A model generated the notes under the pieces. That model saw nothing but the letters and a program-made list of their open reading frames with translations, had not been told where the DNA came from and made no database searches. This document shows positions 3,041 to 31,555 of a stretch of 32,111 nucleotides of DNA, in pieces. The position numbers and the translations under genes were made by a program. This stretch comes from Macrostomum lignano (taxonomy: Eukaryota). Within the stretch, counting starts at the first letter, position 1. Every line of letters begins with the position of its first letter. The stretch covers positions 1-32,111 of the forward strand of contig NIVC01001005.1 of assembly GCA_002269645.1 (NCBI GenBank). Reading direction: 5' to 3'.

Positions 3041-3472
3041 CTGTATGGGGATCAGAGTTGGGATCTGTATGGGGATCAGAGTTGGTATCTGTATGGGAAT
3101 CAGAGTTGGGATCTGTATGGGGATCAGAGTTGGGATCTGTATGGAGATTAGAGTTGGGATCTGTATGGGGATCAGAGTTGGGATCTGTATGGGGATCAGA
3201 GTTGGGATCTGTATGGAGATCAGAGTTGGGATCTGTATGGGGATCAGAGTTGGGATCTGTATGGGGATCAGAGTTGGGATCTGTATGGGGATCAGAGTTG
3301 GGATCTGTATGGGGATCAGAGTTGGGATCTGTATGGGGATCAGAGTTGGGATCTGTATGGGGATCAGAGTTGGGATCTGTATGGGGATCAGAGTTGGGAT
3401 CTGTATGGGGATCAGAGTTGGGATCTGTATGGGGATCAGAGTTGGGATCTGTATGGGGATCAGATTTGGGAT
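3041..3472. repeat. 24-bp minisatellite (CTGTATGGGGATCAGAGTTGGGAT)n, ~18 copies
   Basis: Period 24; produces the MGIRVGIC/SVWGSELG/IPIQIPTL pseudo-ORFs. Confidence 0.97.
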
Positions 3473-4067
3473 CGCTACAGTGGCTGCATAATTATTTGAA
3501 GATTTTTGCAACAAAAATTGTCACAGAAATTCAAGTCAAAATGAAATCCCCTCTGATTGACAGCCCAAGTTGCCATTCATTCCCAATAAACCGTCACGCG
3601 TCCCTGGATGACCCCGGGCACAGCGGCAGGACTCATCGGACCCCCCAGCTCGGAAGGAAGCTGGAAATGCTAAAATCCCATTTAGGGGAAAAAGATTCTC
3701 ACGAATCGGCGAACTCTCCAATGCTGATGAGGCGGCGGCTTGCGTGAGCCCTCGGATCTCAGAGCAGCTCATCGTGAGCTCTTTATGATATTTGGGCACC
3801 GACTGACTCGCGCTCTGAGAGCAGGGGGGCTCAGGAGGAAGGAAGTAACGGGAGGTAGAATGGGGAAAATTCGCCATATCCATATTTCTCGTCTCCATTT
3901 TTCAGCTCCCATACAGTTTCAGCCTTGGCCGCACGCGACTGACTCAGCGAGTGGGGATGCCGTCCGGCTGGGGATGTGGCGGGGCGACCATGCGGGCAAA
4001 CAAAAGAGACCTGCGCAGTCGCTGGGCACGGCGCCAAGGAGGCTCGGGACAAATGCCTGGAATAGCA

Positions 4068-7950: not shown

Positions 7951-8350
7951 TCCACTCGCGCGCTTTCAGCAGCTCCCACTCCCCTCGTCCCGGGGACTCC
8001 GCTGCGACCTGCCTGTCGAAGCCTCTGCCCTCCCCAACCCTCCCGCCAGGACTCAGTCGTGCATTATTTTTCCCCCTCGCGTTTTCCTCGAACGCCTTTC
8101 GATGAATTCTCGTCATTTTTTTCTCTTCCCACTTTATTGGTCTCATTTTCTTCTAGATCCCTAATGGGGAGGAGCTCAGATCCCCAGACTCTCTTCCCCA
8201 TCTCCCCTCGCTCCGGCTCGCAGAGTCAGCAGGTGGCGAGCGAGGTCGCCTCAGGTGAGAGGAGGCTGGCGGGCCGGATGAAGCAGCTTGCCCGCCGTGC
8301 TCACACCTGTTCGCGATTTAGTCGGTGCTGGGAATAACCGGATAGTGTCA

Positions 8351-9000
8351 GTTCATGAGTGAGTTCATGAGTGAGTTCATGAGTGAGTTCATGAGTGAGA
8401 TCATGAGTGAGTTCATGAGTGAGTTCATGAGTGAGTTCATGAGTGAGTTCACGAGTGAGTTCATGAGTGAGTTCATGAGTGAGTTCATGAGTGAGATCAT
8501 GAGTGAGTTCATGAGTGAGTTCATGAGTGAGTTCATGAGTGAGTTCATGAGTGAGTTCATGAGTGAGTTCATGAGTGAGTTCATGAGTGAGTTCATGAGT
8601 GAGTTCATGAGTGAGATCATGAGTGAGTTCATGAGTGAGTTCATGAGTGAGTTCATGAGTGAGTTCATGAGTGAGTTCATGAGTGAGTTCATGAGTGAGT
8701 TCATGAGTGAGTTCATGAGTGAGTTCATGAGTGAGTTCATGAGTGAGTTCACGAGTGAGTTCATGAGTGAGTTCATGAGTGAGTTCATGAGTGAGTTCAT
8801 GAGTGAGTTCATGAGTGAGTTCATGAGTGAGTTCATGAGTGAGTTCATGAGTGAGTTCATGAGTGAGTTCATGAGTGAGTTCATGAGTGAGATCATGAGT
8901 GAGTTCATGAGTGAGTTCATGAGTGAGTTCATGAGTGAGTTCATGAGTGAGTTCATGAGTGAGTTCATGAGTGAGTTCATGAGTGAGATCATGAGTGAGT
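8351..9000. repeat. 12-bp minisatellite (GAGTTCATGAGT)n, ~54 copies
   Basis: Period 12; rare GAGATC and TTCACG variants; source of the MSEF/HELT/NSLM ORFs. Confidence 0.99.
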
Positions 9001-10130
9001 GACACTCGTCTCAGTTCAGCAGCTCCGGGCAGCCAGGTGAATCATTCCATCCCCCAACCCGCCCCAGCTGTCAGCGCCCCTGCCAACTTCCAAAAGAAGC
9101 TGGGATGGCCATGCCGTGTGAGCACTCACTCAGCAGCAGAAGCAGAGAGTTCAGAATTTTGTGGCTGTGCCACCGAGCAGGCTGAGGGGCTCGGGCCACT
9201 TAGGATCGACTCGCGTACTCGCCCTGCTCTGCCCGCCTAATTGATGAAGAGAGGGATAGGCTGGAGAGCAGGCGGAAAGGAACCAGTGAGCGAAGATGCT
9301 GAAGTTGAAGTTTAAAAGATGCTGAGTCCTCCCTACTCAAGCTTATCGATCTGATGAAGAAGAAATGTTTAAGAGTCTGCAGCCAGTCCGCTTTTGTTTA
9401 ACCGCGTGTCCCAATTAGCCGAAATGCCCCATCGGGTCTGGGCTGAAATCGCGGAGCATTTCGCGGGAAGTCACGATCGAAGCGGGGCGAAGCAAAGAAA
9501 CGAATATTGCTGTCCATCTCTCACAGACTCAATTGAGGATTTCGTGTCGCTCATTTTTCCCAAGGGAGCATCTTTTATTCATGCAGCTCTCCAGCTCCTC
9601 GATGAAGCTGATTTCCCAGTCTCCATGCGGGACATCGCATCTCAATTCCCATGAGGTTTCCCTCAGGCTGGGAATTGCAATGCAGGGATTTTGCCCGCCA
9701 GACTCTCAGCTGAAGCAGACAATCCATGCAGAAAGAAAGCGGAATTTCGGGGGGGGGCTCTAGCCGGAGGGATGCTGGCTCAGGTGTAAAAAAATTACAC
9801 TAGCTGCTGATGAAGCATGGGATTCTGGGGGAGACAGGTGGGCGCGCCTAGACCCAGATGAGTAGGTTGGGCTGGGCGAGACACTGCAGCGGACCGGGGA
9901 CTGGCTGCCTGCTCTGGCGAATCAGGTGGCGGCCAGAGGGGATGCTAAAATGGGGGATCATTTTAGCAGAGGAAGGAACAGGGCAGAGGAGGAACAGAAG
10001 AACTGCAGGAGAGACGGAAAGACCTCATCGCTGAGGATTTTGCTTGCAGCAGCCGCCTACGCGCATTTTCCCATCGCTGTTGCTCTTCGGACTGTCAGGG
10101 GAAATTTATCCCAACCATAGCGCACCCACC

Positions 10131-12488
10131 ATGCCGCCGCCGCCGCCGCCGCCGCCGATGCTGCTGATGCTGCTGCTTCTCGCCGCCGCGGCCGCTGCAC
10201 AGCCGCCTCCTCCAGCTGCATCGCCGAGCTCCACGCCGAGCCCGACGCCGCTGGAGGAGGCGGCGCTCGCCGAAGCGCTGTCCGTCGTGCGCCACGACTT
10301 CCGGTTCCTGCGGCACGAGTGGGCCTACACTGCCATCAAGTACCGCGGCTTCATGCGCCACTTCGCCGCGCCCTGGCGCCTCGTAGCCAATCTTGGCGGC
10401 GCCTACACGGTGGGCGGCTCCGTCTACTTCAACCGCTGGGCCTGGGAGAAGGCGCTGGCCACGCTGACGGAGTTCTCCAGCGAGATGGAGCGCTACCACC
10501 GGGTGTACGGCGCCGTCCGGTCAGGCGGCCGCCTCCGCCGGCACTGGCTGGCGCGCTACCCGCGCCTGGCGCGGGACACCATCGATTTTGTTGACTTTGT
10601 CGAGCGCCACTCGGCCCGAGTCTCCGACTGCAGCGGCCGCCCGATCCGCGCCTTCCTGGCGCCTGGCGTCTCCTACGGCGAAGGCGGCGACAACGCCACG
10701 TGCGAGCTGCTGCGGCTGGCAGGCGACATCTTGGCCGACGCCACCGCCGGCCGCCTGTCCGAGGCTCTGATTGGCTATGTTCGGCTGTCCGAGCTCGCCT
10801 GGTCGGCTGATGCCTGGCCCGGACAGTCGGGCCCAGAGTCGGACATCCGCCGGCCAGCCGCCGTGCCTGGCGAGTCCTCGGCGACATCCGACGCCGCCGC
10901 CGCCACCGACATGGCTGAGCAGCCAACTTCGAACCGCTCGTCGCGGCCGATCGACGCCCGGAGCCTCGCCCGGCAGATTCTTGGCCACGCGCTGCTGCAC
11001 CTGCGCCGCTATCGGCCCCGCCCGCCGGCCGCCGGCCTGCCCGACTTCTACTGTCGGGTCGTCCGCGAAGACCTCGACGGCCGGCTGGCACAGCAGCTGG
11101 ACGCCGGCGAGCTGGTGGAGCTCAATGCCGTGCTGGAGCAGTGCCGAAATGCCAGCAGGGGCTCCGCGGCCTCGAAGGACATTGCGGTGGTGTCGAAGGC
11201 CTACACGGAGCTGCTGGGGCTGTGGGAGCGCACGCGGCGCCAGCTGTGGCGGGAGTACTCGGCCTACAGGCAGTACCGCAGCCGCATCCCCGCCATCCTG
11301 GCCGCCAAGTCCGCCATGCGGGCCGTCCTGCCGCTCATCGCCGCTGTCGGCCTGCTGCTCAACGCCGCCGTGCTGATCTTCTACGGCCGATGGGCTTGTC
11401 GACACGGCGGCGGGCGAAGCCTCCTGATCGCCCTGCTGGCGCTCAGCGACTCGGCCCTACTGGCCGTAGCTCTGGTGTCGCTGTTCACCGACAACTACAT
11501 GGAGCACGACCACAGCCTGCGGCCCAGCGGCGCCGCCGATCTCTGGTGCAAGTTCCAGCCGCACCTGTACAACCTGGCCGCCGAGACCTCCGCCTACCTG
11601 CTGGTGGTGCTGGCGGCCGAGCGCTTCCTCGCTGTCCGCGCCTGCTGCTGCAGCGGCGGCGGCCACAAGCCGCTGCCACAGCGCCGGCTCTGGGTCCTGG
11701 CGCTCACCGCCTTCTGCTCCGCCTGCATCCTCAACTGCCTGCTGGTCATTGGCGACGAGCTGGCGGCCCCGGCCAGGTCCACGGTCGGCCGGCAGTGCGT
11801 GCAGTACGTGCGCCTGCGGCACTTCGACTCCAACCTGGCCTACGTGACCCGCGCCAAGCCGCTGCTGAACGCGCTGGCCCGCAGCCTGGCGCCCTTCGGC
11901 CTGGTGCTCGGCCTCAGCCTGGCCACCTGCCGGCTGCTCTGCCGCCGCGGCGCCTACCGGCTGCTGCTCCGCCAGGACGAGGCGCGCGGCGAGCAGCCCG
12001 AGCTGCCGGCGGCCGTGGGCCAGCTGTGCCTGGCGCTGGCCTACCTGCTGCTCACCGCCCCCGCCCCGGTCACCCACGCCCTGTTCATGACGGCCCACGC
12101 CGACCGGCTGGTTGTGAAGCTCGCCAACGGGCTGATGGACGAGTCCGACCCGATGTTCCGCGGCCACTGGCAGCGCCTCGGCCGCCTCACCGTCGCCCAG
12201 TACGTGGCGGAGTTCGGCCTGCTGCCCGCCAGCGCCGCCTGCTGCTTCTTCGCCTTCGCTGCCACCGACCGCGCCTTCCGCGGCTTCGTGCGGGCGGCCC
12301 TGCGCGGTAGGTCGCCGAGCCCGGCGTCCGCGGCTCCTGCGTCGGCTGTCGGGGAGGCCGCGACGACCGCCATCGCCGACTTGTCGGACCCGGCGATCGG
12401 TCAGGCAGCAGAGATGGCCGGTGCTGAGCCCGCGGAGCGGCAGCGAAGGGTTCAGGAAGCCGACTGGGAGCAGACTGACCTTATTTGA
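10131..12488 (+). CDS. Intronless class A (rhodopsin-like) GPCR, peptide-receptor-like 7TM, with signal peptide and ~380-aa extracellular N-terminal domain (785 aa from ATG 10131; alternative ATG 10158)
   Basis: CCACCATG context at 10131. Signal-like MLLMLLLLAAAAAA|QPPP. Seven hydrophobic segments from ~11325: TM1 GLLLN, TM2 LALSD, TM3 WCK...AERFLAV, ECL2 Cys, TM5 LAPF, TM6 YLLLTAP, TM7 and helix 8 FRGFVRAAL. Strong GC3 bias throughout. Confidence 0.9.
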   Translation: MPPPPPPPPMLLMLLLLAAAAAAQPPPPAASPSSTPSPTPLEEAALAEALSVVRHDFRFLRHEWAYTAIKYRGFMRHFAAPWRLVANLGGAYTVGGSVYFNRWAWEKALATLTEFSSEMERYHRVYGAVRSGGRLRRHWLARYPRLARDTIDFVDFVERHSARVSDCSGRPIRAFLAPGVSYGEGGDNATCELLRLAGDILADATAGRLSEALIGYVRLSELAWSADAWPGQSGPESDIRRPAAVPGESSATSDAAAATDMAEQPTSNRSSRPIDARSLARQILGHALLHLRRYRPRPPAAGLPDFYCRVVREDLDGRLAQQLDAGELVELNAVLEQCRNASRGSAASKDIAVVSKAYTELLGLWERTRRQLWREYSAYRQYRSRIPAILAAKSAMRAVLPLIAAVGLLLNAAVLIFYGRWACRHGGGRSLLIALLALSDSALLAVALVSLFTDNYMEHDHSLRPSGAADLWCKFQPHLYNLAAETSAYLLVVLAAERFLAVRACCCSGGGHKPLPQRRLWVLALTAFCSACILNCLLVIGDELAAPARSTVGRQCVQYVRLRHFDSNLAYVTRAKPLLNALARSLAPFGLVLGLSLATCRLLCRRGAYRLLLRQDEARGEQPELPAAVGQLCLALAYLLLTAPAPVTHALFMTAHADRLVVKLANGLMDESDPMFRGHWQRLGRLTVAQYVAEFGLLPASAACCFFAFAATDRAFRGFVRAALRGRSPSPASAAPASAVGEAATTAIADLSDPAIGQAAEMAGAEPAERQRRVQEADWEQTDLI

Positions 12489-12576
12489 CCTCGCCGGACA
12501 GACTGCTGACATTTTCATTTATCCTCCGGATTGAAAATGCACTTGGCTGTTGTTGTGTATTTACCTGGCAGTTGCG

Positions 12577-12860
12577 AATTGACCTCGGAACATCCAAGGG
12601 TTTTTTGTACAAGTTGACCTTGGATGACTCCCAGTTGTTTATTGTTGACCTCAGATGACCCCATTTGTCCATGGTTGACCTGAAATGACCCCATTTGTCC
12701 ATGGTTGACCTGAAATGACTCCATATGTCCTTGCTTGATCTCGGATGATCCCAGTTGTCCATGGTTGACCTCGGCTGACCTTAGTTGTCCATGGTTGACC
12801 TCGGCTGACCTTAGTTGTCCATGATTGACCTCGGCTGACCTTAGTTGTCCATGGTTGACA
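12577..12860. repeat. Degenerate 30-bp minisatellite (GTTGTCCATGGTTGACCTCGGCTGACCTTA-like), ~9 copies, downstream of the GPCR stop
   Basis: TTGACC core recurs at 30-bp spacing (e.g. 12674, 12704, 12764, 12794, 12824, 12854). Confidence 0.9.
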
Positions 12861-13033: not shown

Positions 13034-14645
13034 GTTTTTTGATTTGTTGTTGCTGTTGCCCTTTTCTGAATACTTTAAAGCAGAAATAGCAAATATGTAT
13101 CATACAGTTCCCTTAATCCGTGCTACTTGTCTCTGCAAAATCAATAATCAACCTCAAATAAAGTTCTTTCGCAGAGTTCAGTGCCAGCAATTCTTTTTTC
13201 ATTTCATTGTCCAGATAAAAAGCTGACATATTTGATTGACAACTATAAGGCCAGGTAATTTCAATGGCTCCAAAACAGTTGCTTTAGACACCTGAGGTTT
13301 CCTGGAATTTTGACCGGGCTGCCTGGCCGGCTGGCACGCGACCCCCATTATCATAGCTATTCCCCCTTTCAGTCAGATTTCCCAATAGAAGAGCGGGGCC
13401 CGATGCAGTCAGCTGAGCTCAACGGGAAATGCCAATTATGAAGATGAGCCCGCTGCAGAAAAAATGTTGCGACTATATGGCCACCGGCTAGCAGAGATTG
13501 CTTGTGCGGGCTCATCCGCAGCTCTAAATCGGGATTCCAGGCTTGGCATGGGAGGCGCATCGCAACGATAATTGTGGCCTCATCAACTCAATTGGTTGCT
13601 GCATAGGTGAAGTGGATGTCATGAATGGCGCTGTGCTGTGCTGCATTGGCGCAACTTCTGATTAGTTTGGCATGCGAAATGGCCAGTGGAATGTGCAGTT
13701 ATTGCGCCATATAAATGAGATTATCCTATCAATAACTCCGCTTATACCATGGGGGTTCGGAGAGCAAGGGCTGCACTAGTTCTGCTTTTTGCACTTCTCT
13801 GGCTGGAGTAATGATGAATTCATATACTCGTATAACCTTACTTCCCTGGCAATTTAATATAATTCAAATACAAGGAATTTTTATAAATATCAATGGACTT
13901 ATTAATGTTTCACTAATCCCCTTTGAGTTGAGTTGATCCTCATACAGACTTGATGTCATCGATTTTCGTTACTTCAGTCGCAGTTTAATCACTAATCACA
14001 AACACAATCTGATAGGGTATGCAGCGGCCCTGGATTCCTAACCGTCAGATAAGTTCACTCTGTGCCCTAGGGGTTGGGCTCTCATGGATGCGAATTGCGC
14101 GACAACCATCTAGCAATTTTTCGCGCACACGCCATGAGTTATTCAAAGACACATGTAGGAGTTACATATGAATGGGGCTTGAAATACGCTGACTCAAAAG
14201 ATGCTTGCACCTTGCACAATATTTTTTTCCTATTCGACGAGGTAAGCGTAGTATTAAACATCAAACAATCAGAACAGAACATACAGAACATGATAACGTC
14301 AGACCCATTGAGTCTAATTTCATCGCAATATAATTATGAAGGGGTTGAAATGGTACATGGTAATTTTTACGGTAGAACGATTGATATCTTCAAAAATAAT
14401 TTGAGTTAAAATCCATTTCTTTATTTTAGAAGCAGTTAGAAAAAGCTTGCAACCTAATTTAATACTAGTATATAAACTAATGTTGTTTTTCTTTCTTTTC
14501 ATAGAAGTTGTAAATTTCAAAACACTATACGTCACGTTACTGCAAGAATTCACTATCTTTATATTTTTTCCTTACTGTCTCTATTAAAGTCATTTGGCTT
14601 TGGCTTTAACTTCTAGAATTAAAAAATCATCTTACATTGAAAGTA

Positions 14646-14813
14646 ATGGAAAACGCAACTTTAAATGATACCCTGAATGGTACAGCTGGAAATGCCACAT
14701 TTACAGCTACAACTGAAGGCTTTTTGTTGGCCTATTCTAGTCTTTTTACCATGGCTATTGTGCCTATTATCATTGGATCACTGCAGTCTGTTGCCGCTAA
14801 CAAGCTAAATAAG
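14646..14813 (+). CDS. HM13: Signal peptide peptidase (HM13/SPP, GxGD aspartyl protease) exon 1
   Basis: MENATLNDTLNGTAGNAT (four N-glycosylation sequons), then TM1 EGFLLAYSSLFTMAIVPIIIGS; AAG|GTAATT donor, phase 0. Confidence 0.85.
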
Positions 14814-15495
14814 GTAATTTTATAATTTTAAGCATGCCTTCAATTTGCCCAAAATAAGCCTGCTGTTATAATTTACTTTTTAGTTAAAAAATAAAATAAT
14901 ATTATAAATATTTGCTATCTATAGACATAGTATCATTGTTATGAAAACTTTAATTTAATGTCGCTTTAATTTGCCTTAAATACAGAACTATAAAACATCT
15001 AAATTTAATATTAATTTCAAATATATGCTTTCCTATTCCTAAAGTTGACTTGTTTTTTCTAAATTGATTTATCAAAGTTAACTATTCTATTAGGCCTACC
15101 TTCAAACCAATCTTAATATCTAGTACATCTTGATACTTGACTATTTATTGTCTACTTTGATAGTAATTGAAATTTTATAGTTGTTTTGTTGTATGACATA
15201 TTTTAAATACAATATATTTATATTATTAAGATTTATTTTATTGTCAAATAGATCAATCAAAGATAATTTGAATTAAATTGGATTTATATAATATTTAAAT
15301 AATTAATGTGTTAAAACTGGTATTTTTTATTAACTGTATAGAACTAGTTCATTTTAAATTTTTTGTTTTACTTTTAACTTTTTAGAACAGTTAAACCTTT
15401 TTTTTAAATTTAGCTTTCTATTTTTTCATTAAGGGTTGGCTATTCTTTCTGATCAAAATTTAGCTATTGTAACTAATGACTATGTATATAAAGAC

Positions 15496-15895
15496 TAGGG
15501 GTCGGACGTGATCACGATTGTGATCACAATTTCTTGAATTCATGACCATTTTTTTCACAATCGTTATTTCCTTGAAACCCGTTCACGACAGTCGTGAATT
15601 TTGCTTTATTACATTTTTATTAGAAGTATGACTTTTCTACTTGGTTTACCAAAATATGTGAACACAAATGTGTAAAAGAGTAATAAATTTTAAATTTGTT
15701 GACTTGACAGCATTACCAAGTAGCTATTATCAATTTATAAATATTTCTTTTCTTGTTTTGTTATTTTTAACACTTGTAACCTACGGGCTCAAAATATGTG
15801 TATGCAAATATAAATTCACGATCACAATCACGCCCGACTTTGAAAATTTCACAAAATTTCACGCCGACCAAAATTTTTTGCTCATCTGACCTCTA
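15496..15895. mobile_element. Non-autonomous hAT-type DNA transposon (MITE), 400 bp, in SPP intron 1
   Basis: Perfect 8-bp TSD ATAAAGAC at 15488-15495 and 15896-15903. 11-bp TIRs TAGGGGTCGGA / TCTGACCTCTA (2 mismatches). Subterminal inverted GTGATCAC/TCACG-rich motifs. An 8-bp TSD with short TAG-starting TIRs is typical of hAT. Confidence 0.85.
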
Positions 15896-16564
15896 ATAAA
15901 GACTATGCCAAATATAAATTTAATCATTTTTATATGGACTAATTGTGTAGATTGATTTATACTTAGAACTTTTGGTCCTATGCTATTTGCTATCTTGGCA
16001 ATCTTTATATGCCAAGCTATATACCAAGAGGGCATGCCAGGCCCCTCTATATGCCAATTTGTATGCCAATGGTATACTCTGAATTTCTAATTTCTGAATG
16101 CCAAAATTTTCTAGCATTTATGTATACCATCTGGAGTCTGGAATGTGCACAGTTGGCATCCATGACTCTTAAGAAAATAGTATGCATATACACCTGATAT
16201 ACATTTCATAGAATCATATGGAAAAATTAGTTTTAAGTAGAAAAAAAGATTGAAAAAGTTCAATAAAAGGTTCATATTTTAGCATAAATTCTAAACTTTC
16301 AAGCTTTTAAGCTCATTAATAATTGTAACAAATCTATAGTTTATACATATCAATTTTCTGCTATAAATAGTATAGAACAAGAATGATGAATGATCAACTA
16401 AATTATTAGCCAAAAAGGGTCCTATACGCAATACAAATCATTTATTGTAACAACACTAGCTTAGATTTTGAGAGTGCAGATATATATTAAATTTTTGGCA
16501 TGAATTTGTAACTCTTCAATTTTTGTTTGGGTATGCACCTAGCATGATTTGGAATATAGAAGTA

Positions 16565-16668
16565 ATCATCCACTTTGGGAATAGCTACTTTAGTAACAGC
16601 CACTTCAGTAACAAACCATGACCAATCTGGTAATAGCCATTTTGGTAATAGCCACTTTGGTAACAAGT
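16565..16668. repeat. Short degenerate ~15-bp repeat (TAGCCACTTTGGTAA-like) in SPP intron 1
   Basis: About 5 imperfect copies (CACTTTGGGAA, TAGCTACTTTAGTAA, CAGCCACTTCAGTAA, TAGCCATTTTGGTAA, TAGCCACTTTGGTAA). Confidence 0.6.
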
Positions 16669-17290
16669 GGAGAATAATATATTGTATATATAATAATAAT
16701 AATATATATTGATTGATGAACTTGAAAAAAAGACAAAAAATAATTGAGATAATTCTTGCACACTTTGAAAGATTTTTGTTGATGCAGAAAACTACTTGTT
16801 TAAGTATTTTAATTAATATTTTTAATTACTAGGTGAATTAGATGCATGTACCAAAAACACCCTGTAATTGACCAAATATTGTATACTATACAATTGTATA
16901 ATATAATATAATATTTTGTACTATATATAATATATATTAGAATCTCTGAGTTAGCAACTTAAAATTACACAATATACTTTTTTCTTATGCCATATTTACC
17001 TTGTATAGTTTGAGTAGTAGGGCTTAAGTGAAGATAATATACTGTTAGCTATTCTTTTTGTACAATAAAAAATATAAAAAAGCCTTTGGAAATAAGTTCT
17101 TTGTTTATGTTGGAATTTATTATGTTGGTTAAATTATTATTGAATGGTTGCAAATAGATTTAATATCATTAAATGTTATATGGGAAATTATGAGAGTCAT
17201 CCATTTTGGTTATTGATTTAAATGATAGGTACTCATGAACAATAATTGTAATTTTGCAACTGTAATTTAAACCTAACTTAATTTGAACAG

Positions 17291-17631: not shown

Positions 17632-18412
17632 CACTTGTCACTCACCCAGCCTTGTCACTCCCCCAGCCTTGTCACTCCCCAGCCTTGTCACTCCCCCAGC
17701 CTTTTCACTACCGCCGCCCTTGTCACTCCCCCACCCTTGTCACTCCCCCACCCTTGTCACTCCCCCACCCTTGTGACTCCCCCAGCCTTGTCAATCCCCC
17801 AGCCTTGTCACTCCCCCAGCCTTTTTACTACCGCCGCCCTGATCACTCCCCCAGCCTTGTCACTCCCCCAGCCTTGTCACTCCCCCAGCCTTGTCAATCC
17901 CCCAGCCTTGTCACTCCCCCAGCCTTGTCACTCCCCCAGCCTTGTCAATCCCCCAGCCTTTTCACTACCGCCGCCCTGATCACTCCCCCAGCCTTTTTAC
18001 TACCGCCGCCCTGATCACTCCCCCAGCCTTGTCACTCCCCCAGCCTTGTCACTCCCCCAGCCTTGTCAATCCCCCAGCCTTGTCACTCCCCCAGCCTTGT
18101 CACTCCCCCAGCCTTGTCAATCCCCCAGCCTTTTCACTACCGCCGCCCTGATCACTCCCCCAGCCTTGTCACTCCCCCAGCCTTTTCACTACCGCCGCCC
18201 TGATCACTCCCCCAGCCTTGTCACTCCCCCAGCCTTGTCACTCCCCTAGCCTTGTCACTCCGCCAGCCTTGTCACTCCCCAGCCTTGTCACTCCGCCAGC
18301 CTTGTCACTCCCCCAGCCTTTTCACTACCGCCGCCCTTGTCACTCCCCCGCCCTTGTCACTCCCCCCACCCTTGTCACTCCCCCACCCTTGTCACTCTGA
18401 TACCCTTGTCAC
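17632..18412. repeat. ~17-bp minisatellite (CTTGTCACTCCCCCAGC)n with TTTTCACTACCGCCGCC variants, filling SPP intron 3
   Basis: Period 16-17 with higher-order reuse of variant blocks. Confidence 0.95.
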
Positions 18413-18685: not shown

Positions 18686-18744
18686 GTGAGTGAGCTCGGA
18701 TCGTACAATACAAGTCTTGGATTCCCTTCTTAGATCATTGTTGG

Positions 18745-19382
18745 GAATCTTAGGGGAGATCTCACTTCTTAGATGGGAATCTTAGGGGAGATCTCACTTC
18801 TTAGATGGGATTTTTAGGGGAGATCTCACTTCTTAGATGGGAATCTTAGGGGAGATCTCACTTCTTAGATGGGAATCTTAGGGGAGATCTCACTTCTTAG
18901 ATGGGAATCTTAGGGGAGATCTCACTTCTTAGATGGGAATCTTAGGGGAGATCTCACTTTTTAGATGGGAATCTTAGGGGAGATCTCACTTCTTAGATGG
19001 GAATCTTAGGGGAGATCTCACTTCTTAGACAGGATTCTTAGGGGAGATGTCACTTCTTAGATAGGAATCTTATGGGAGATCTCACGTCTTAGGTAGAAAT
19101 CTTAGGGGAGATCTTACTTCTTAGACGGGATTCTTAGGGGAGATCTCACTTCTCAGATGGGATTCTCAGGGAAGATCTCACTTCTTAGATGGGATTCTTA
19201 GGGGAGATCTCACTTCTTAGATGGAGTCTAGGGTAGATCTCACTTCTTAGATGGGATTCTTAGGGGAGATCTCACTTCTTAGATGGGAATATTAGGGTAG
19301 ATCTCACTTCTTAGATAGAAATCTTAGGAGAGATCTCACTTCTTAGATGGGATTCTTAGGGGAGATCTCACTTCTTAGATGG
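18745..19382. repeat. 32-bp minisatellite (GAATCTTAGGGGAGATCTCACTTCTTAGATGG)x20, filling SPP intron 4
   Basis: 638 bp = 20 x 32 minus one 2-bp deletion; bracketed by direct repeat GATCATTGTTGG (18733-18744, 19383-19394). Confidence 0.95.
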
Positions 19383-19420
19383 GATCATTGTTGGTGCCAT
19401 CGCTCACCCCGCCTGGCCAG

Positions 19421-20067
19421 GCTCGGAGCTGTGGCTGAACCTGGACTTCGACCTCCTTGACCTGGCCAACCTGGCCGTGTCTGCCTGCGTGGGCCTGTGG
19501 TACCTGGCCACCCGCCACTGGCTGGCTAACAACGCCTTCGGCTTGGCCTTCGCCATCAACGCCATCGAGCTGCTGCACCTCAACAAGGTGGCCACCGGGG
19601 CCATCCTGCTCAGCGGCCTGTTCATCTACGACGTCTTCTGGGTGTTCGGCACCAACGTGATGGTGACGGTGGCCAAGAGCTTCGAGGCCCCCATCAAGCT
19701 GGTGTTCCCGCAGGACCTGCTGGAGAAGGGCCTGGCGGCCGACAAGTTCGCCATGCTCGGCCTCGGCGACATCGTCATCCCCGGCATCTTCGTGGCCCTC
19801 CTGCTGCGCTACGACGCCGCCAGGGGCCGCTCCGGCCGCCCGTACTTCTGCTGCTGCCTGGCCGCCTACTGCGCCGGCCTGCTGGCCACGATCGTTGTGA
19901 TGCACGTGTTCAAGCACGCCCAGCCAGCGCTGCTGTACCTGGTGCCCTGCTGCCTGGGCGCCCCGCTGCTGCTGGCCCTGGCCAGGGGCGAACTGGGCTG
20001 CCTGCTGCGCTACGAGGACACGGACGGGGCCGCCGATAGCCGCACGGGCGCCAAGAAGACCGACTGA
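19421..20067 (+). CDS. HM13: HM13/SPP exon 5 (catalytic; last coding exon). Joined CDS 1197 bp, 398 aa
   Basis: HWLANNAFG, YD (LFIYDVFWVFGTNVM), GxGD (LGLGDIVIPG), PAL (QPALLYLVP) and a C-terminal KKxx ER-retrieval motif (KKTD). Exon lengths 168+96+83+203+647 sum in frame. Confidence 0.97.
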
Positions 20068-24364: not shown

Positions 24365-24771
24365 ATGGAAGCCGCCGAAAACGACACCGGCAGCGTAGAC
24401 GCCGGTGTCGACTTGAACCTGCTAAACTCCCCAGCCTGGCGGGCCGCCGGCCTCGCCTTCCTGCTCGCCGCCTGCTGGCTGGGCCTGGCCGGCAACGCGC
24501 TGGTTCTGGTGCTGATGGCCGCCAACAAGGAGCTGCAGAACGGCATCAACGCCTGCGTGGCCAACATCGCCGCTTGCGACCTGCTGGTCTGCTGCCTCCT
24601 CCTGCCGTTGGCCATCGCGCAGCGGGCGGCCGGCGCTCGTCTAGTCGACGAAACCGTCTGCATGGTGAGCGGCTGCGCTCTCTTCGTGTGCACCGGCGTC
24701 GCCAATTCCAGCTTTGCTCTGATCGGCTTCAACAGATTCGTGTTCCTGCTGTATCCCGCCGCCTACCGCAG
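24365..24771 (+). CDS. Class A GPCR, melatonin-receptor/GPR84-like, exon 1 (TM1-TM3)
   Basis: N-terminal NDT sequon; TM1 GLAGNALV, TM2 NIAACDLL, TM3 VC...IGFNRFV (NRY-type motif), YPAAYR; AG|GTTCGC donor, phase 2. Confidence 0.85.
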
Positions 24772-24810
24772 GTTCGCACCGCGCGCTCGGGGAACCGGGG
24801 CTTTGCGGAG

Positions 24811-24995
24811 CGGGGAGTGAGGTGGCGGTTTTCAAGGACGGGGAGTGAGGTGGCGGTTATCAGAGACGGGGAGTGAGGTGGGGTTATCAGAGACGGGGAG
24901 TGAGGTGGCGGTTATCAGAGACGGGGAGTGAGGTGGGGTTATCAGAGGCGGGGAGTGAGGTGGGGTTATCAGAGGCGGGGAGTGAGGTGGGGTTT
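24811..24995. repeat. 27/28-bp minisatellite (GGGGAGTGAGGTGG[C]GGTTATCAGAGAC)n, ~6.5 copies, in the GPCR intron
   Basis: Direct reading; lies between donor 24772 and acceptor 25130. Confidence 0.93.
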
Positions 24996-25130
24996 ATTAG
25001 AGCCAAGGAATGGGGTGGGGCTATCAGGGGCGAATATAAGAAGCAGCTAGGGAATAAGGTGGGTGGGGTTTGTGTACACGCAAGCCGCCAAGCACGAAAA
25101 GCCACCCAATCATTCTCTCCACCCTCCCAG

Positions 25131-25731
25131 ATGCCTGGTGGGCCCACGCCAGGTGGCTGTCCGCCTGGTCGCAAACTGGGCGGTGTGGCTGGTCCTGAGC
25201 GGTGTGGTGTTCGACAGGCGAGCTTTCCACTACGTGCCGGACAGCTTCCTGTGCTTCTTTAGCGACGCGGATGCGGACCTGGCCACCACGGTGCTGGTGC
25301 TCATGGCCATGGTGACGGTGCCCTCTGCGGTGGCCGGCTTCTGCTACTGCCGCATCCTGCTCCACGTGCTGGCCTCCCGGCGTCGAGTCCGGGACCTTCA
25401 GAACTGCGGCAGCCAGTCGGGCGAACAGACCCGCCTAGTTCGCTCTCTGGCGGTGGTGATGCTGAACTACCTCATCTTCAACGCGCTGTGGCTGCCGTAC
25501 TCCTGCTACGCCATGTTCGGCCGCCTGTTGCGGCTGGCCTCAGACGCCGAGCACAATGCCCTGGTGTGGGCGGCGCTGTTCGCCTGCTCAGTGAAGCCGC
25601 TGCTGCAGGTCAGCATCAGCCCGGAGTTCCGGCGCGGCCTGCGGCGGCTCCGCCTGAGAAAGTGCAGCCGGCGGTCGCAGGCGGCGACATCGACAGCCCC
25701 CGTCGTCGAGATGGTCGCCAGCCGGAACTGA
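25131..25731 (+). CDS. Class A GPCR exon 2 (TM4-TM7, C-tail). Joined CDS 1008 bp, 335 aa
   Basis: CCCTCCCAG acceptor; TM4 Trp (ANWAVW), ECL2 YVPDSFLCFF (compare melatonin receptor YDPRIYSCTF), TM5 VPSAVAGFCYCRI, TM6 LWLPY, TM7 SVKPLLQ, helix 8 EFRRGL. Confidence 0.9.
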
Positions 25732-25789: not shown

Positions 25790-25936
25790 GGTGAGAATGC
25801 AGGTGGGTGAGCATGCAGGTGGGTGAGCATGCAGGTGGGTGAGAATGCAGGTGCAGGTGGGTGAGCATGCAGGTGGGTGAGAATGCAGGTGGGTGAGCAT
25901 GCAGGTGGGTGAGCATGCAGGTGGGTGAGCATGCAA
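25790..25936. repeat. 16-bp minisatellite (GGTGAGCATGCAGGTG)n, copy 1, ~9 units
   Basis: Starts ~60 bp after the GPCR stop; contains one 6-bp GTGCAG insertion. Confidence 0.95.
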
Positions 25937-26345
25937 GTGGGCAATCAGTGGCGGAGGCGGAGGACATAATGGTCTCAAACACATCGCGTGACATATAACG
26001 GTTATCAAGCAACAAACCTGTCCATAACTGGCGATTTCACAAAATTCAAGAAGAGAGGCGATTTTGATCGAGCAGGGCTGATGGAAAGCATAAAAAGAAC
26101 ACTTTGTAAAAACTTGCATAATGCTTACTGTCATTTTTATACTGGGGTCCGGCATTGGTTCTCTTGTAAAACTGAATACACTGTACTAATTAATTTGGAG
26201 CTGCCCTGACAGCCGTTTATTTGATTTATTGAGGCGGAATTCAGCATCCGCAGAGTACCGCCAGGAATCTGCTGAGAGGCAGGAGCGATGGCTCAGCTCG
26301 AAAACTCAAAATTTAAGATTTTAAATCCCCCCCCAATTTAAATTC

Positions 26346-26533
26346 CCCCCTCAGCAGCACCCAACCCCCTCAGCAGCACCCAACCCCCTCAGCAGCACCC
26401 AACCCCCCTCAGCAGCACCCAACCCCCCTCAGCAGCACCCAACCCCCTCAGCAGCACCCAACCCCCCTCAGCAGCACCCAACCCCTTCAGCAGCACCCAA
26501 CCCCCTCAGCAGCACCCAACCCCCTCAGCAGCA
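26346..26533. repeat. 19/20-bp minisatellite (CAGCAGCACCCAACCCCC[C]T)n, copy 1, ~9 units, truncated at the duplication junction
   Basis: Runs directly into the duplicated GPCR sequence (CAGCAGCAC|TCTGCGGTG). Confidence 0.95.
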
Positions 26534-26942
26534 CTCTGCGGTGGCCGGCTTCTGCTACTGCCGCATCCTGCTCCACGTGCTGGCCTCCCGGCGTCGAGTC
26601 CGGGACCTTCAGAACTGCGGCAGCCAGTCGGGCGAACAGACCCGCCTAGTTCGCTCTCTGGCGGTGGTGATGCTGAACTACCTCATCTTCAACGCGCTGT
26701 GGCTGCCGTACTCCTGCTACGCCATGTTCGGCCGCCTGTTGCGGCTGGCCTCAGACGCCGAGCACAATGCCCTGGTGTGGGCGGCGCTGTTCGCCTGCTC
26801 AGTGAAGCCGCTGCTGCAGGTCAGCATCAGCCCGGAGTTCCGGCGCGGCCTGCGGCGGCTCCGCCTGAGAAAGTGCAGCCGGCGGTCGCAGGCGGCGACA
26901 TCGACAGCCCCCGTCGTCGAGATGGTCGCCAGCCGGAACTGA
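26534..26942 (+). pseudogene. 5'-truncated tandem duplicate of GPCR exon 2 (mid-TM5 to stop)
   Basis: Matches 25323-25731 at offset 1211 with identical translation; lacks TM1-TM4 and an ATG. Confidence 0.85.
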
Positions 26943-26999: not shown

Positions 27000-27685
27000 G
27001 GGTGAGAATGCAGGTGGGTGAGCATGCAGGTGGGTGAGCATGCAGGTGGGTGAGCATGCAGGTGGGTGAGCATGCAGGTGGGTGAGCATGCAGGTGGGTG
27101 AGCATGCAGGTGGGTGAGCATGCAGGTGGGTGAGCATGCAGGTGGGTGAGCATGCAGGTGGGTGAGCATGCAGGTGGGTGAGCATGCAGGTGGGTGAGCA
27201 TGCAGGTGGGTGAGAATGCAGGTGGGTGAGCATGCAGTTGGGTGAGCATGCAGGTGGGTGAGCATGCAGGTGGGTGAGCATGCAGGTGGGTGAGAATGCA
27301 GGTGGGTGAGCATGCAGTTGGGTGAGCATGCAGGTGGGTGAGCATGCAGGTGGGTGAGCATGCAGGTGGGTGAGCATGCAGGTGGGTGAGCATGCAGGTG
27401 GGTGAGCATGCAGGTGGGTGAGCATGCAGGTGGGTGAGCATGCAGGTGGGTGAGCATGCAGGTGGGTGAGCATGCAGGTGGGTGAGCATGCAGGTGGGTG
27501 AGCATGCAGGTGGGTGAGCATGCAGGTGGGTGAGAATGCAGGTGGGTGAGCATGCAGGTGGGTGAGAATGCAGGTGGGTGAGCATGCAGGTGGGTGAGCA
27601 TGCAGGTGGGTGAGAATGCAGGTGGGTGAGAATGCAGGTGGGTGAGCATGCAGGTGGGTGAGCATGCAGGTGGGTGAGCATGCAA
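27000..27685. repeat. 16-bp minisatellite, copy 2, ~43 units
   Basis: 538 bp longer than copy 1 = 34 extra units minus the 6-bp insertion. Confidence 0.96.
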
Positions 27686-28094
27686 GTGGGCAATCAGTGG
27701 CGGAGGCGGAGGACATAATGGTCTCAAACACATCGCGTGACATATAACGGTTATCAAGCAACAAACCTGTCCATAACTGGCGATTTCACAAAATTCAAGA
27801 AGAGAGGCGATTTTGATCGAGCAGGGCTGATGGAAAGCATAAAAAGAACACTTTGTAAAAACTTGCATAATGCTTACTGTCATTTTTATACTGGGGTCCG
27901 GCATTGGTTCTCTTGTAAAACTGAATACACTGTACTAATTAATTTGGAGCTGCCCTGACAGCCGTTTATTTGATTTATTGAGGCGGAATTCAGCATCCGC
28001 AGAGTACCGCCAGGAATCTGCTGAGAGGCAGGAGCGATGGCTCAGCTCGAAAACTCAAAATTTAAGATTTTAAATCCCCCCCCAATTTAAATTC

Positions 28095-30884: not shown

Positions 30885-31555
30885 TCTAGTATAATGGATG
30901 CAGGAATAGAATGGATTGCTAATCTAGCCTATCATGGATGCAGGAATAGAATGGATTGCTAATCTAGCCTATCATGGGTGCAGGGATAGAATGGATTGCT
31001 AATCTAGCCTATCATGGCAGCAGGAATAGAATGGATTGCTAATCTAGCCTATCATGGGTGCAGGGATAGAATGGATTGCTAATCTAGCCTATCATGGGTG
31101 CAGGAATAGAATGGATTGCTAATCTAGCCAATCATGGGAGCAGGAATAGAATGGATTGCTAATCTAGCCTATCATGGATGCAGGAATAGAATGGATTGCT
31201 AATCTAGCCTATCATGGGTGCAGGAATAGAATGGATTGCTAATCTAGCCTATCATGGATGCAGGAATAGAATGAATTGCTAATCTAGCCTATCATGGATG
31301 CAGGAATAGAATGGATTGCTAATCTAGCCTATCATGGGTGCAGGAATAGAATGGATTGCTAATCTAGCCTATCATGGGTGCAGGAATAGAATGGATTGCT
31401 AATCTAGCCTATCATGGGTGCAGGAATAGAATGGATTGCTAATCTAGCCTATCATGGGTGCAGGAATAGAATGGATTGCTAATCTAGCCTATCATGGGTG
31501 CAGGAATAGAATGGATTGCTAATCTAGCCTATCATGGGTGCAGGAATAGAATGGG
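30885..31555. repeat. 40-bp minisatellite (ATCATGGGTGCAGGAATAGAATGGATTGCTAATCTAGCCT)n, ~16.5 copies
   Basis: Period 40, few variants. Confidence 0.97.

Follow-up and report, generated by a model that had tools for sequence, protein, structure and literature searches.

Introduction

In LGR-type receptors, a group that includes the glycoprotein-hormone receptors, the relaxin receptors and LGR4-6, a signal peptide and a large ectodomain precede a rhodopsin-type seven-transmembrane (7TM) bundle, and the ectodomain captures the ligand or modulates the bundle. To our knowledge, large ectodomains in the G-protein-coupled receptors (GPCRs) that make up the rhodopsin (class A) family are, in vertebrates, roughly confined to LGRs. 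The gene that is the subject of this work, located at positions 10131-12488 on the forward strand of a 32,111-nucleotide (nt) stretch of DNA from the flatworm Macrostomum lignano (contig NIVC01001005.1 of assembly GCA_002269645.1; this whole stretch is referred to below as the window), encodes a predicted receptor with the same general order of parts: a signal peptide, an N-terminal region of approximately 370 residues, in which two lobes are separated by a low-complexity linker, and a rhodopsin-type 7TM half. LGR-type receptors are employed here as a working analogy; unlike them, the M. lignano protein carries no detectable LRR, LDLa or hinge and has no sequence relation to the group, and its ectodomain is predicted to be alpha-helical and not an LRR solenoid. 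The original prediction, made from the DNA letters alone, had taken the near-restriction of large class A ectodomains to LGRs as a sign that this may be a new module. The argument holds roughly for vertebrates, but little can be expected of it in an invertebrate lineage that has been poorly sampled. The explanation that best accounts for the data presented below is that the product of the gene is an orphan receptor restricted to one lineage, probably that of the macrostomid flatworms, in which a helical, secreted front end is placed on a diverged rhodopsin-family 7TM, and we assign to this reading as a whole a probability of roughly 0.55.

The second group of described systems to which the gene can be compared is that of the flatworm-specific orphan receptors, named PROF1/Srfb, Srfa, Srfc, Rho-L, Rho-R and fwRhods, from a lineage in which hundreds of lineage-specific rhodopsin-like receptors are known (PMC3261222, PMC4862687, PMC6114109). 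Like these groups, the gene is intronless, retains only remnants of rhodopsin motifs and does not significantly resemble the GPCRs of any other phylum; in addition, the sole relative of its ectodomain comes from a flatworm. A large N-terminal domain is not mentioned for any of the flatworm orphan families in the portions of the three surveys that were consulted. The comparison with PROF1 can be brought to the level of individual motifs, as the Y...T.P of transmembrane segment (TM) 6 resembles the PROF1-II motif [F/V]...T.P, whereas ERF in TM3 and LP..A in TM7 fall outside the motifs D[R/K][C/M], DR[L/V] and N[F/I] (PMC3261222, Table 3). Membership in PROF1 was rejected, since phmmer provided no sequence link and only the TM6 motif fits. 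Furthermore, no schistosome or planarian receptor was returned by an exhaustive phmmer search, assuming that those proteomes are present in the library. The protein is filed here as a putative divergent rhodopsin-family receptor with an unclassified ectodomain, in no named subfamily.

Integrity of the gene

The gene is intact, and consists of a complete single-exon coding sequence (10131-12488, forward strand) of 785 codons followed by the stop codon TGA at 12486-12488. The reading frame is open from 10035, and its first ATG, at 10131, lies in the context CACCATGC. The longest stop-free run in this frame covers 817 codons, while 300 dinucleotide-preserving shuffles of positions 10001-12600 generated longest runs of 278 +/- 60 codons, with a maximum of 521, which places the length of the open reading frame (ORF) approximately 9 standard deviations above the shuffle mean. 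The GC content at codon positions 1, 2 and 3 is 0.72, 0.54 and 0.90, respectively. These two observations, taken together, indicate that the ORF is not a by-product of GC-rich composition, the DNA at this locus being approximately 70% GC and the window as a whole 51.7%.

The GC content of third codon positions (GC3) also allows the continuity of the gene to be followed along its length. GC3 is at least 0.80 in all 90-nt bins between residues 41 and 760, low-complexity linker included, stays evenly between 0.8 and 1.0 from lobe 1 through the linker and lobe 2 to the 7TM, and falls abruptly to about 0.45 just outside the ORF, both upstream and downstream. In nearly all bins, including those at domain junctions, third-position GC is highest in the frame of the receptor, and no frame shift or intron-like dip in the codon signal was seen across the ORF. 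Within the linker GC3 is 0.80-0.87, and this stretch is thus still coding. The uniformity of GC3 across the junctions argues against a hidden intron, a frame shift or a join between the N-terminal region and the 7TM, and bears out the earlier claim that a single exon of uniform GC3 speaks against a mis-joined model: GC3 is 0.90 throughout, there is one ORF, and the N-terminal region is in frame with the 7TM. The interval 10131-11324, on which that claim had been centred, corresponds to residues 1-398, all before TM1. It is of note that, among the flatworms compared in a published study, the coding sequences richest in GC3 are those of M. lignano, whose GC content is 45.9% in the genome and 58.7% in coding sequences (PMC6739440).

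Upstream of the ATG, at a distance of 82 nt, the forward strand reads TTTTGCTTGCAG (10038-10049). This motif looks like an acceptor for 3' splicing or trans-splicing and may, speculatively, be a candidate start of the mature 5' untranslated region. No long terminal repeats, inverted repeats or other flanking repeats were found around the gene, and a mobile-element or retro-insertion context was rejected on this basis. Exact-sequence look-ups of the 785- and 814-residue products returned no record. The locus appears to be an intronless chromosomal gene with the look of an expressed one.

The seven-transmembrane half

The 7TM domain occupies residues 398-713 (11322-12269), as delineated by hydropathy, the Pfam 7tm_1 match and an alignment with the vasopressin V1a receptor, with approximate segments at residues 398-420 (TM1), 430-452 (TM2), 483-505 (TM3), 519-541 (TM4), 582-604 (TM5), 628-650 (TM6) and 691-713 (TM7). 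It is followed by an Ala/Ser/Pro-rich cytoplasmic tail of 72 residues (714-785; 12270-12485) that ends in EQTDLI. With class A GPCRs (PF00001, 7tm_1) the protein has in common the seven segments, N1.50 (in GLLLN), the LAxxD motif of TM2 (LALSD, with D2.50), Cys3.25 (in WC) and its counterpart in extracellular loop (ECL) 2, an ERF variant of the E/DRY motif, a tryptophan in TM4 and prolines in TM5 (APF, P5.50), TM6 (P6.50) and TM7 (P7.50). Helix 8 carries DRAFR. The homology to class A is weak and is carried by TM1-4. Pfam 7tm_1 matches residues 430-557 to profile positions 20-139 (E=4.1e-5), and is the sole Pfam family that does so even at E<=10. The best match in the PDB is the V1a receptor (E=0.009), with GLLLN, LALSD, DLWC and AAERF in register with its GN, LSLAD, WLC and ADRY.

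The protein differs from class A receptors in the N-terminal region described below, in the loss of W6.48, N7.49 and Y7.53, in an ECL3 of approximately 40 residues and in TM5-7, which are unrecognisable to PDB profiles; a two-sequence profile of TM5-7 found nothing in the PDB below E=0.2. TM5-7 have one homologue, a 220-residue product encoded on a 1,044-bp ENA metagenome contig (ERZ21788738 ctg10629l) whose surroundings are uninformative. It spans TM5 to the tail with 34% identity (phmmer, E=1.5e-12). TM5-7, ECL3 and helix 8 are conserved between the two; the metagenome product shares the substitutions in TM6 and TM7, and the common pattern reads APF/VPF in TM5, Y-L-L-T-x-P in TM6, L/I-P in TM7 and DR-x-FR at helix 8, with H-x-D...L-x-N-x-L...DP-x-FR-x-HW in ECL3. 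Together, the class A landmarks and this conserved divergence suggest that the 7TM half is rhodopsin-derived but extremely divergent.

The N-terminal region

The protein begins with MPPPPPPPP, followed by LLMLLLLAAAAAA and, after the predicted cleavage site, by QPPPP. By hydropathy, residues 1-23 (10131-10199) form a predicted cleavable signal peptide with a poly-Pro n-region, the h-region LLMLLLLAAAAAA and a cleavage site between AAA and Q that fits the -3/-1 rule. The poly-Pro run is encoded by a perfect (GCC)8 microsatellite at 10133-10157, detected by Tandem Repeats Finder (TRF), which is a likely place of length polymorphism. The signal peptide leads into a Pro/Ser/Thr-rich stalk (residues 24-40, QPPPPAASPSSTPSPTP; 10200-10250) and then into the conserved core of lobe 1 (residues 41-170; 10251-10640), whose limits follow from the phmmer match to the M. 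lignano relative and from secondary structure predicted by AlphaFold2 (AF2): a long helix (40-88), a Gly-rich beta-hairpin (92-100) and further helices at 102-131, 133-142 and 144-165. The remainder of lobe 1 (171-226; 10641-10808), not covered by any homologue, holds the sequon N188, Cys191 and predicted helices at 188-205 and 209-226. The linker (227-275; 10809-10955) is low in complexity, rich in S, A, P, E and D, and predicted to be disordered; it contains the sequon N268 and has no secondary structure in the AF2 models, with a predicted local distance difference test (pLDDT) score of 24-33. Lobe 2 (276-397; 10956-11321) consists of predicted helices at 276-292, 303-343 and 349-383, the last helix running from residue 386 into TM1; it carries Cys308, Cys338 and the sequon N340, and its juxtamembrane stretch (ERTRRQLWREYSAYRQYRSR) is very rich in arginine.

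The ectodomain has four cysteines in 374 residues, at positions 167 (SDCS), 191 (ATCE), 308 (FYCR) and 338 (EQCR), and three sequons, N188 (NAT), N268 (NRS) and N340 (NAS). Three of its six asparagines lie in sequons, where 0.69 would be expected (P=0.023); of the seven asparagines found elsewhere, none does. Given the signal peptide and the confinement of the sequons to this part of the protein, we infer that the N-terminal region of approximately 370 residues is extracellular. An origin of lobes 1 and 2 by internal duplication was rejected (BLASTP between the lobes, E=56).

Two AF2 runs, one of the ectodomain with a two-sequence alignment (mean pLDDT 46.6) and the other of the full-length protein, yielded low-confidence models that predict almost entirely helix, apart from the one hairpin at residues 92-100. 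The secondary structure from residue 40 onwards is the same in both independent runs, and the helices of lobe 1 are the only part to reach a pLDDT of 60-78. The layout that the original prediction had read from the sequence survives this analysis nearly complete: the signal peptide followed by a Pro/Ser stalk is recovered by hydropathy and recurs in the M. lignano relative, the four cysteines and the NAT, NRS and NAS sequons are at the positions given, the region looks helical, and its two lobes are split by a linker predicted to be disordered. The description of approximately 350 residues rich in W, Y, F and R is upheld for W (2.5%), Y (4.2%) and R (12.7% of residues 41-395), but not for F (2.8%).

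Relatives of the ectodomain

An exhaustive phmmer search of the protein against 1.84 billion representative proteins produced two matches only, both of them fragments: the metagenome product introduced above and UniRef100_A0A1I8FML4, an M. lignano protein that bears the name 'Autophagy-related protein 27'. Residues 184-343 of the latter align with residues 7-169 of the receptor, with 42% identity (phmmer, E=1.6e-29). The aligned part opens at an internal methionine and comprises a signal peptide (MPGPLLLALLMLPGALG, followed after the cleavage site by QPG), a P/S/T-rich stalk with two sequons (NGT and NQS) and the core of lobe 1, and the protein stops at the equivalent of residue 169. The alignment contains 51 invariant columns, many of which are W, Y, F, H or R, and the conserved motifs of lobe 1 are RHEWA, KYxGF, FAxxWRLVAxxGG, GSxYxxRWxWExAL, ExYHRVY and RLRxxxLxRxPxL. 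Since the relative keeps signal peptide, stalk and lobe 1, these parts form a conserved unit, and lobe 1 at least is a real conserved domain. Cys167 of the receptor is replaced by alanine in the relative, which makes a conserved two-disulfide design doubtful.

Residues 44-179 of the relative are a genuine ATG27 / mannose-6-phosphate-receptor domain (Pfam). Most likely, annotation has joined two neighbouring genes in this record, which breaks off behind lobe 1, in which case the M. lignano relative of the receptor would probably lie directly downstream of Atg27. The Atg27 gene is absent from the 32,111-nt window, and an exact-sequence look-up of the relative returned no record. In the metagenome contig, a polypyrimidine-CAG acceptor (TTTTTGTGCGCAG) is present at positions 120-140, just before TM5. 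This probable intron indicates that the receptor family is not intronless everywhere and that the contig derives from a eukaryote in the metagenome sample. Lobe 1 and TM5-7 are, thus, conserved in two separate relatives, one for each half of the receptor.

Search for a described ectodomain family

No described family was matched by the ectodomain. Pfam searches at E<=10 with the full protein, lobe 1 and lobe 2 returned no family for it, and this holds in particular for LRR, LDLa, GAIN/GPS, EGF, ANF_receptor and Fz, in agreement with the earlier statement that the region carries no LRR, LDLa, GAIN, EGF or Venus-flytrap signature. HRM, 7tm_2 and 7tm_3 were likewise without a match in Pfam at E<=10, NCBIfam returned nothing, and sequence and profile searches of the PDB with the ectodomain were negative, the lobe 1 profile finding nothing below E=0.2. 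Lobe 2 has no homologue in the exhaustive phmmer search and no match in Pfam or the PDB. The claim that the ectodomain lies outside known families has thus withstood the Pfam, NCBIfam, PDB and phmmer searches. These results also dispose of two other receptor classes: adhesion/secretin GPCRs were rejected for want of any GPS, GAIN, HRM or 7tm_2 match at E<=10, and Frizzled and class C receptors because four cysteines stand against the ten of the Fz domain and no Fz, ANF_receptor or 7tm_3 match was found.

Scans of JGI metagenomes with lobe 1 and TM5-7 profiles, and of viral and prokaryotic contigs with the lobe 1 profile, identified no relatives, so that the ectodomain is unlikely to have come from a virus or a bacterium. 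Three word-indexed protein searches (with the full-length protein, with the full-length protein and two fragments, and with lobe 1 alone) also returned nothing and missed the two known relatives as well; low-complexity words (poly-P, poly-A and poly-L) probably swamped the first two.

Foldseek searches of the PDB with the low-confidence AF2 models found nothing better than E of approximately 1. The best GPCR matches of the full-length model were S1P3 and EP3 (E 2.3-2.5, probability 0.13-0.16), and matches to TetR, PA28 and BAR-domain proteins, all at E>1, were discarded as noise that gives no evidence of a fold relation. Because the underlying models are poor, these results carry no information on whether the fold is new or known.

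Weighing the evidence

A number of observations weigh against the interpretation of the gene as a receptor with a large ectodomain on a rhodopsin-family bundle. The 7tm_1 match scores 23.6 bits, under the gathering score of 30.5, and a neighbouring class A gene in the window, of like base composition and taken as a yardstick, has 237 PDB matches below 1e-3 where the receptor has none. TM6 reads YLLLTAP instead of F/YxxxWxP, with T in the place of W6.48 and a degenerate CWxP, and TM7 reads LPASA instead of NPxxY; this erosion renders signalling competence uncertain. The full-length AF2 model (three sequences, mean pLDDT 44.9) does not fold the 7TM bundle confidently either, and Foldseek provides no structural support. 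The stretch before TM1 is strongly positive, contrary to the positive-inside rule if it is extracellular, in a protein that is Arg-rich as a whole. In addition, neither match contains both ectodomain and 7TM, so that the fusion is known from this gene alone, and conservation of the ectodomain can be demonstrated for only about 130 residues (41-170) of approximately 350. The original assignment to class A is consequently retained for the rhodopsin-like landmarks of TM1-TM4, but it has to be qualified by the sub-threshold 7tm_1 score, the unmatched TM5-7 and the degenerate CWxP and NPxxY motifs.

Part of this evidence could be accommodated by an N-terminal region that is mainly a device for oligomerisation, trafficking or spacing and not a ligand-binding module. 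The long helices (40-88, 102-165 and 303-383) would then build a stalk, coiled-coil or otherwise helical, by which the receptor dimerises or a small conserved head is held off the membrane. In that case the linker, like lobe 2, would be rapidly evolving filler whose make-up follows from the drive towards GC. Such a role would fit the helices of 30-50 residues present in both AF2 runs, the demonstration of conservation for residues 41-170 only, the disordered, low-complexity character of residues 227-275, the Ala/Arg/Leu/Gly-rich composition with its GC3 of 0.9, and the presence of only four cysteines, of which Cys167 is not conserved. We nevertheless consider it unlikely, as the invariant W/Y/F/H/R clusters of lobe 1 and its Gly-rich hairpin suggest a globular domain or a binding surface and not a heptad coiled coil. 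Somewhat less probable is the proposal that the 7TM half no longer signals via a G protein and serves as an atypical or decoy 7TM, or as a scaffold, with function residing in the ectodomain. The replacement of W6.48, N7.49 and Y7.53 (YLLLTAP, LPASA), repeated in the metagenome relative, would be expected of such a protein, as would TM5-7 that match no solved GPCR and a 7tm_1 score below threshold; D2.50, ERF, P5.50, P6.50 and P7.50 are, however, kept, and flatworm PROF1 receptors with similarly eroded motifs are transcribed and treated as receptors (PMC3261222).

Two further explanations concern the nature of the gene itself, and both appear very improbable. If the membrane half stemmed from a 7TM family other than rhodopsin/class A, its likeness to 7tm_1 being convergent, the low Pfam and PDB scores and the absence of structural confirmation by Foldseek would be understandable, but 7tm_1 is the sole Pfam family at E<=10 and five class A landmark residues are in register with the V1a receptor in one ungapped-like alignment. 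Least credible of all is an artefact, be it a pseudogene, a mistaken merger of two neighbouring genes or an ORF that arose by chance. GC-rich DNA does yield long spurious ORFs, several of which (200-390 residues) overlap the receptor in other frames, and the sole relative of the ectodomain is itself a chimeric gene model; against this stand the 817 stop-free codons versus a shuffle maximum of 521, the unbroken GC3 signal across the junctions and the independent homologues, under selection, of both halves.

Neighbouring features of the window

The window is eukaryotic and contains both GC3-rich exons and AT-rich spacers. An AT-rich island at 14001-17000 (GC 0.25-0.33), flanked by GC-rich genes, contrasts strikingly with exons of GC3 0.9. 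The class A gene used as a yardstick lies at 24365-25731 on the forward strand and is an ordinary GPCR gene. It has one exon at about 24365-24790 and another at about 25130-25731, and its best PDB matches are melatonin-receptor-like (E=6.5e-18); its intron contains a 27/28-bp minisatellite (24811-25027). Paralogy between this gene and the receptor was rejected, as the sequences are unrelated. Two 300-nt blocks recur at 100% identity at distances of 1.2-1.75 kb (25320-25619 as 26531-26830, and 25852-26151 as 27601-27900), and as a result the last exon of this GPCR is partly present a second time, in an ORF at 26325-26939 that matches 7tm_1 positions 168-258. The repeated blocks stem either from a tandem duplication that took place very recently amid the minisatellites or from an error of assembly.

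A long GC3-rich exon (0.93) at 19360-20064 on the forward strand codes for the greater part of a signal peptide peptidase, as it matches positions 78-284 of the 286 in the Pfam profile Peptidase_A22B (E=1.4e-73). The N-terminal part that it lacks must lie upstream, beyond a 32-bp minisatellite at 18742-19384. An exon-like open stretch at 3-320 on the same strand (GC3 0.90, no Pfam match), truncated where the window begins, may be the final part of a further gene. Minisatellites are extraordinarily dense, with 45 TRF rows in the window, in which the repeat unit measures 4-40 bp and the copy number reaches 124; examples are found at 389-907, 1392-2497, 3041-3473, 8350-9000, 17634-18397, 27000-27690 and 30890-31554. 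Numerous long but spurious ORFs result from these arrays, among them those with 'HELT' and 'MSEF' repeats at 8301-9005. Scans of the window for Rfam families and tRNA genes were empty.

A possible mechanism and its implications

If the gene does encode a lineage-restricted orphan receptor, its mode of action could be imagined along the following lines. The cleavable signal peptide would export the N-terminal region of approximately 370 residues, within which lobe 1 would act as a recognition module, be it by binding a ligand from outside or, as a tethered modulator, by docking onto the extracellular loops. Lobe 2 and the helix that is continuous with TM1 would relay the state of lobe 1 to the bundle, and the long, conserved ECL3 (HxD...LxNxL...DPxFRxHW) would also take part in the relay, possibly by contributing to the docking surface. 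That D2.50 and ERF are retained suggests a G-protein or arrestin-type output; that W6.48, N7.49 and Y7.53 are lost suggests that activation relies on a non-canonical switch. In this scheme we infer the folding of lobe 2 and coupling, and we can only speculate that the ectodomain plays a ligand-binding or autoinhibitory role.

A bolder proposal, which is tentative and on balance doubtful, is that lobe 1, perhaps together with lobe 2, adopts an undescribed all-alpha extracellular fold that would define a macrostomid or flatworm receptor family, the ectodomain being a sensor or tethered regulator rigidly coupled to TM1, with an origin independent of that of LGRs. What appears to be new at this locus, as far as sequence comparison can tell, is the combination of domains and an orphan domain restricted to one lineage.

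On present evidence the gene represents one more lineage-specific orphan receptor, and such GPCRs are common in flatworms. Phylum-specific receptors are regarded as attractive targets by flatworm GPCR surveys (PMC6114109). If the architecture is conserved and the fold is new, the receptor would represent a second, independent gain of a large sensing domain by rhodopsin-family receptors, and would define a flatworm-restricted receptor class of interest as a template for phylum-specific receptors, for the evolution of GPCRs and for the biology of Macrostomum, a regeneration model.

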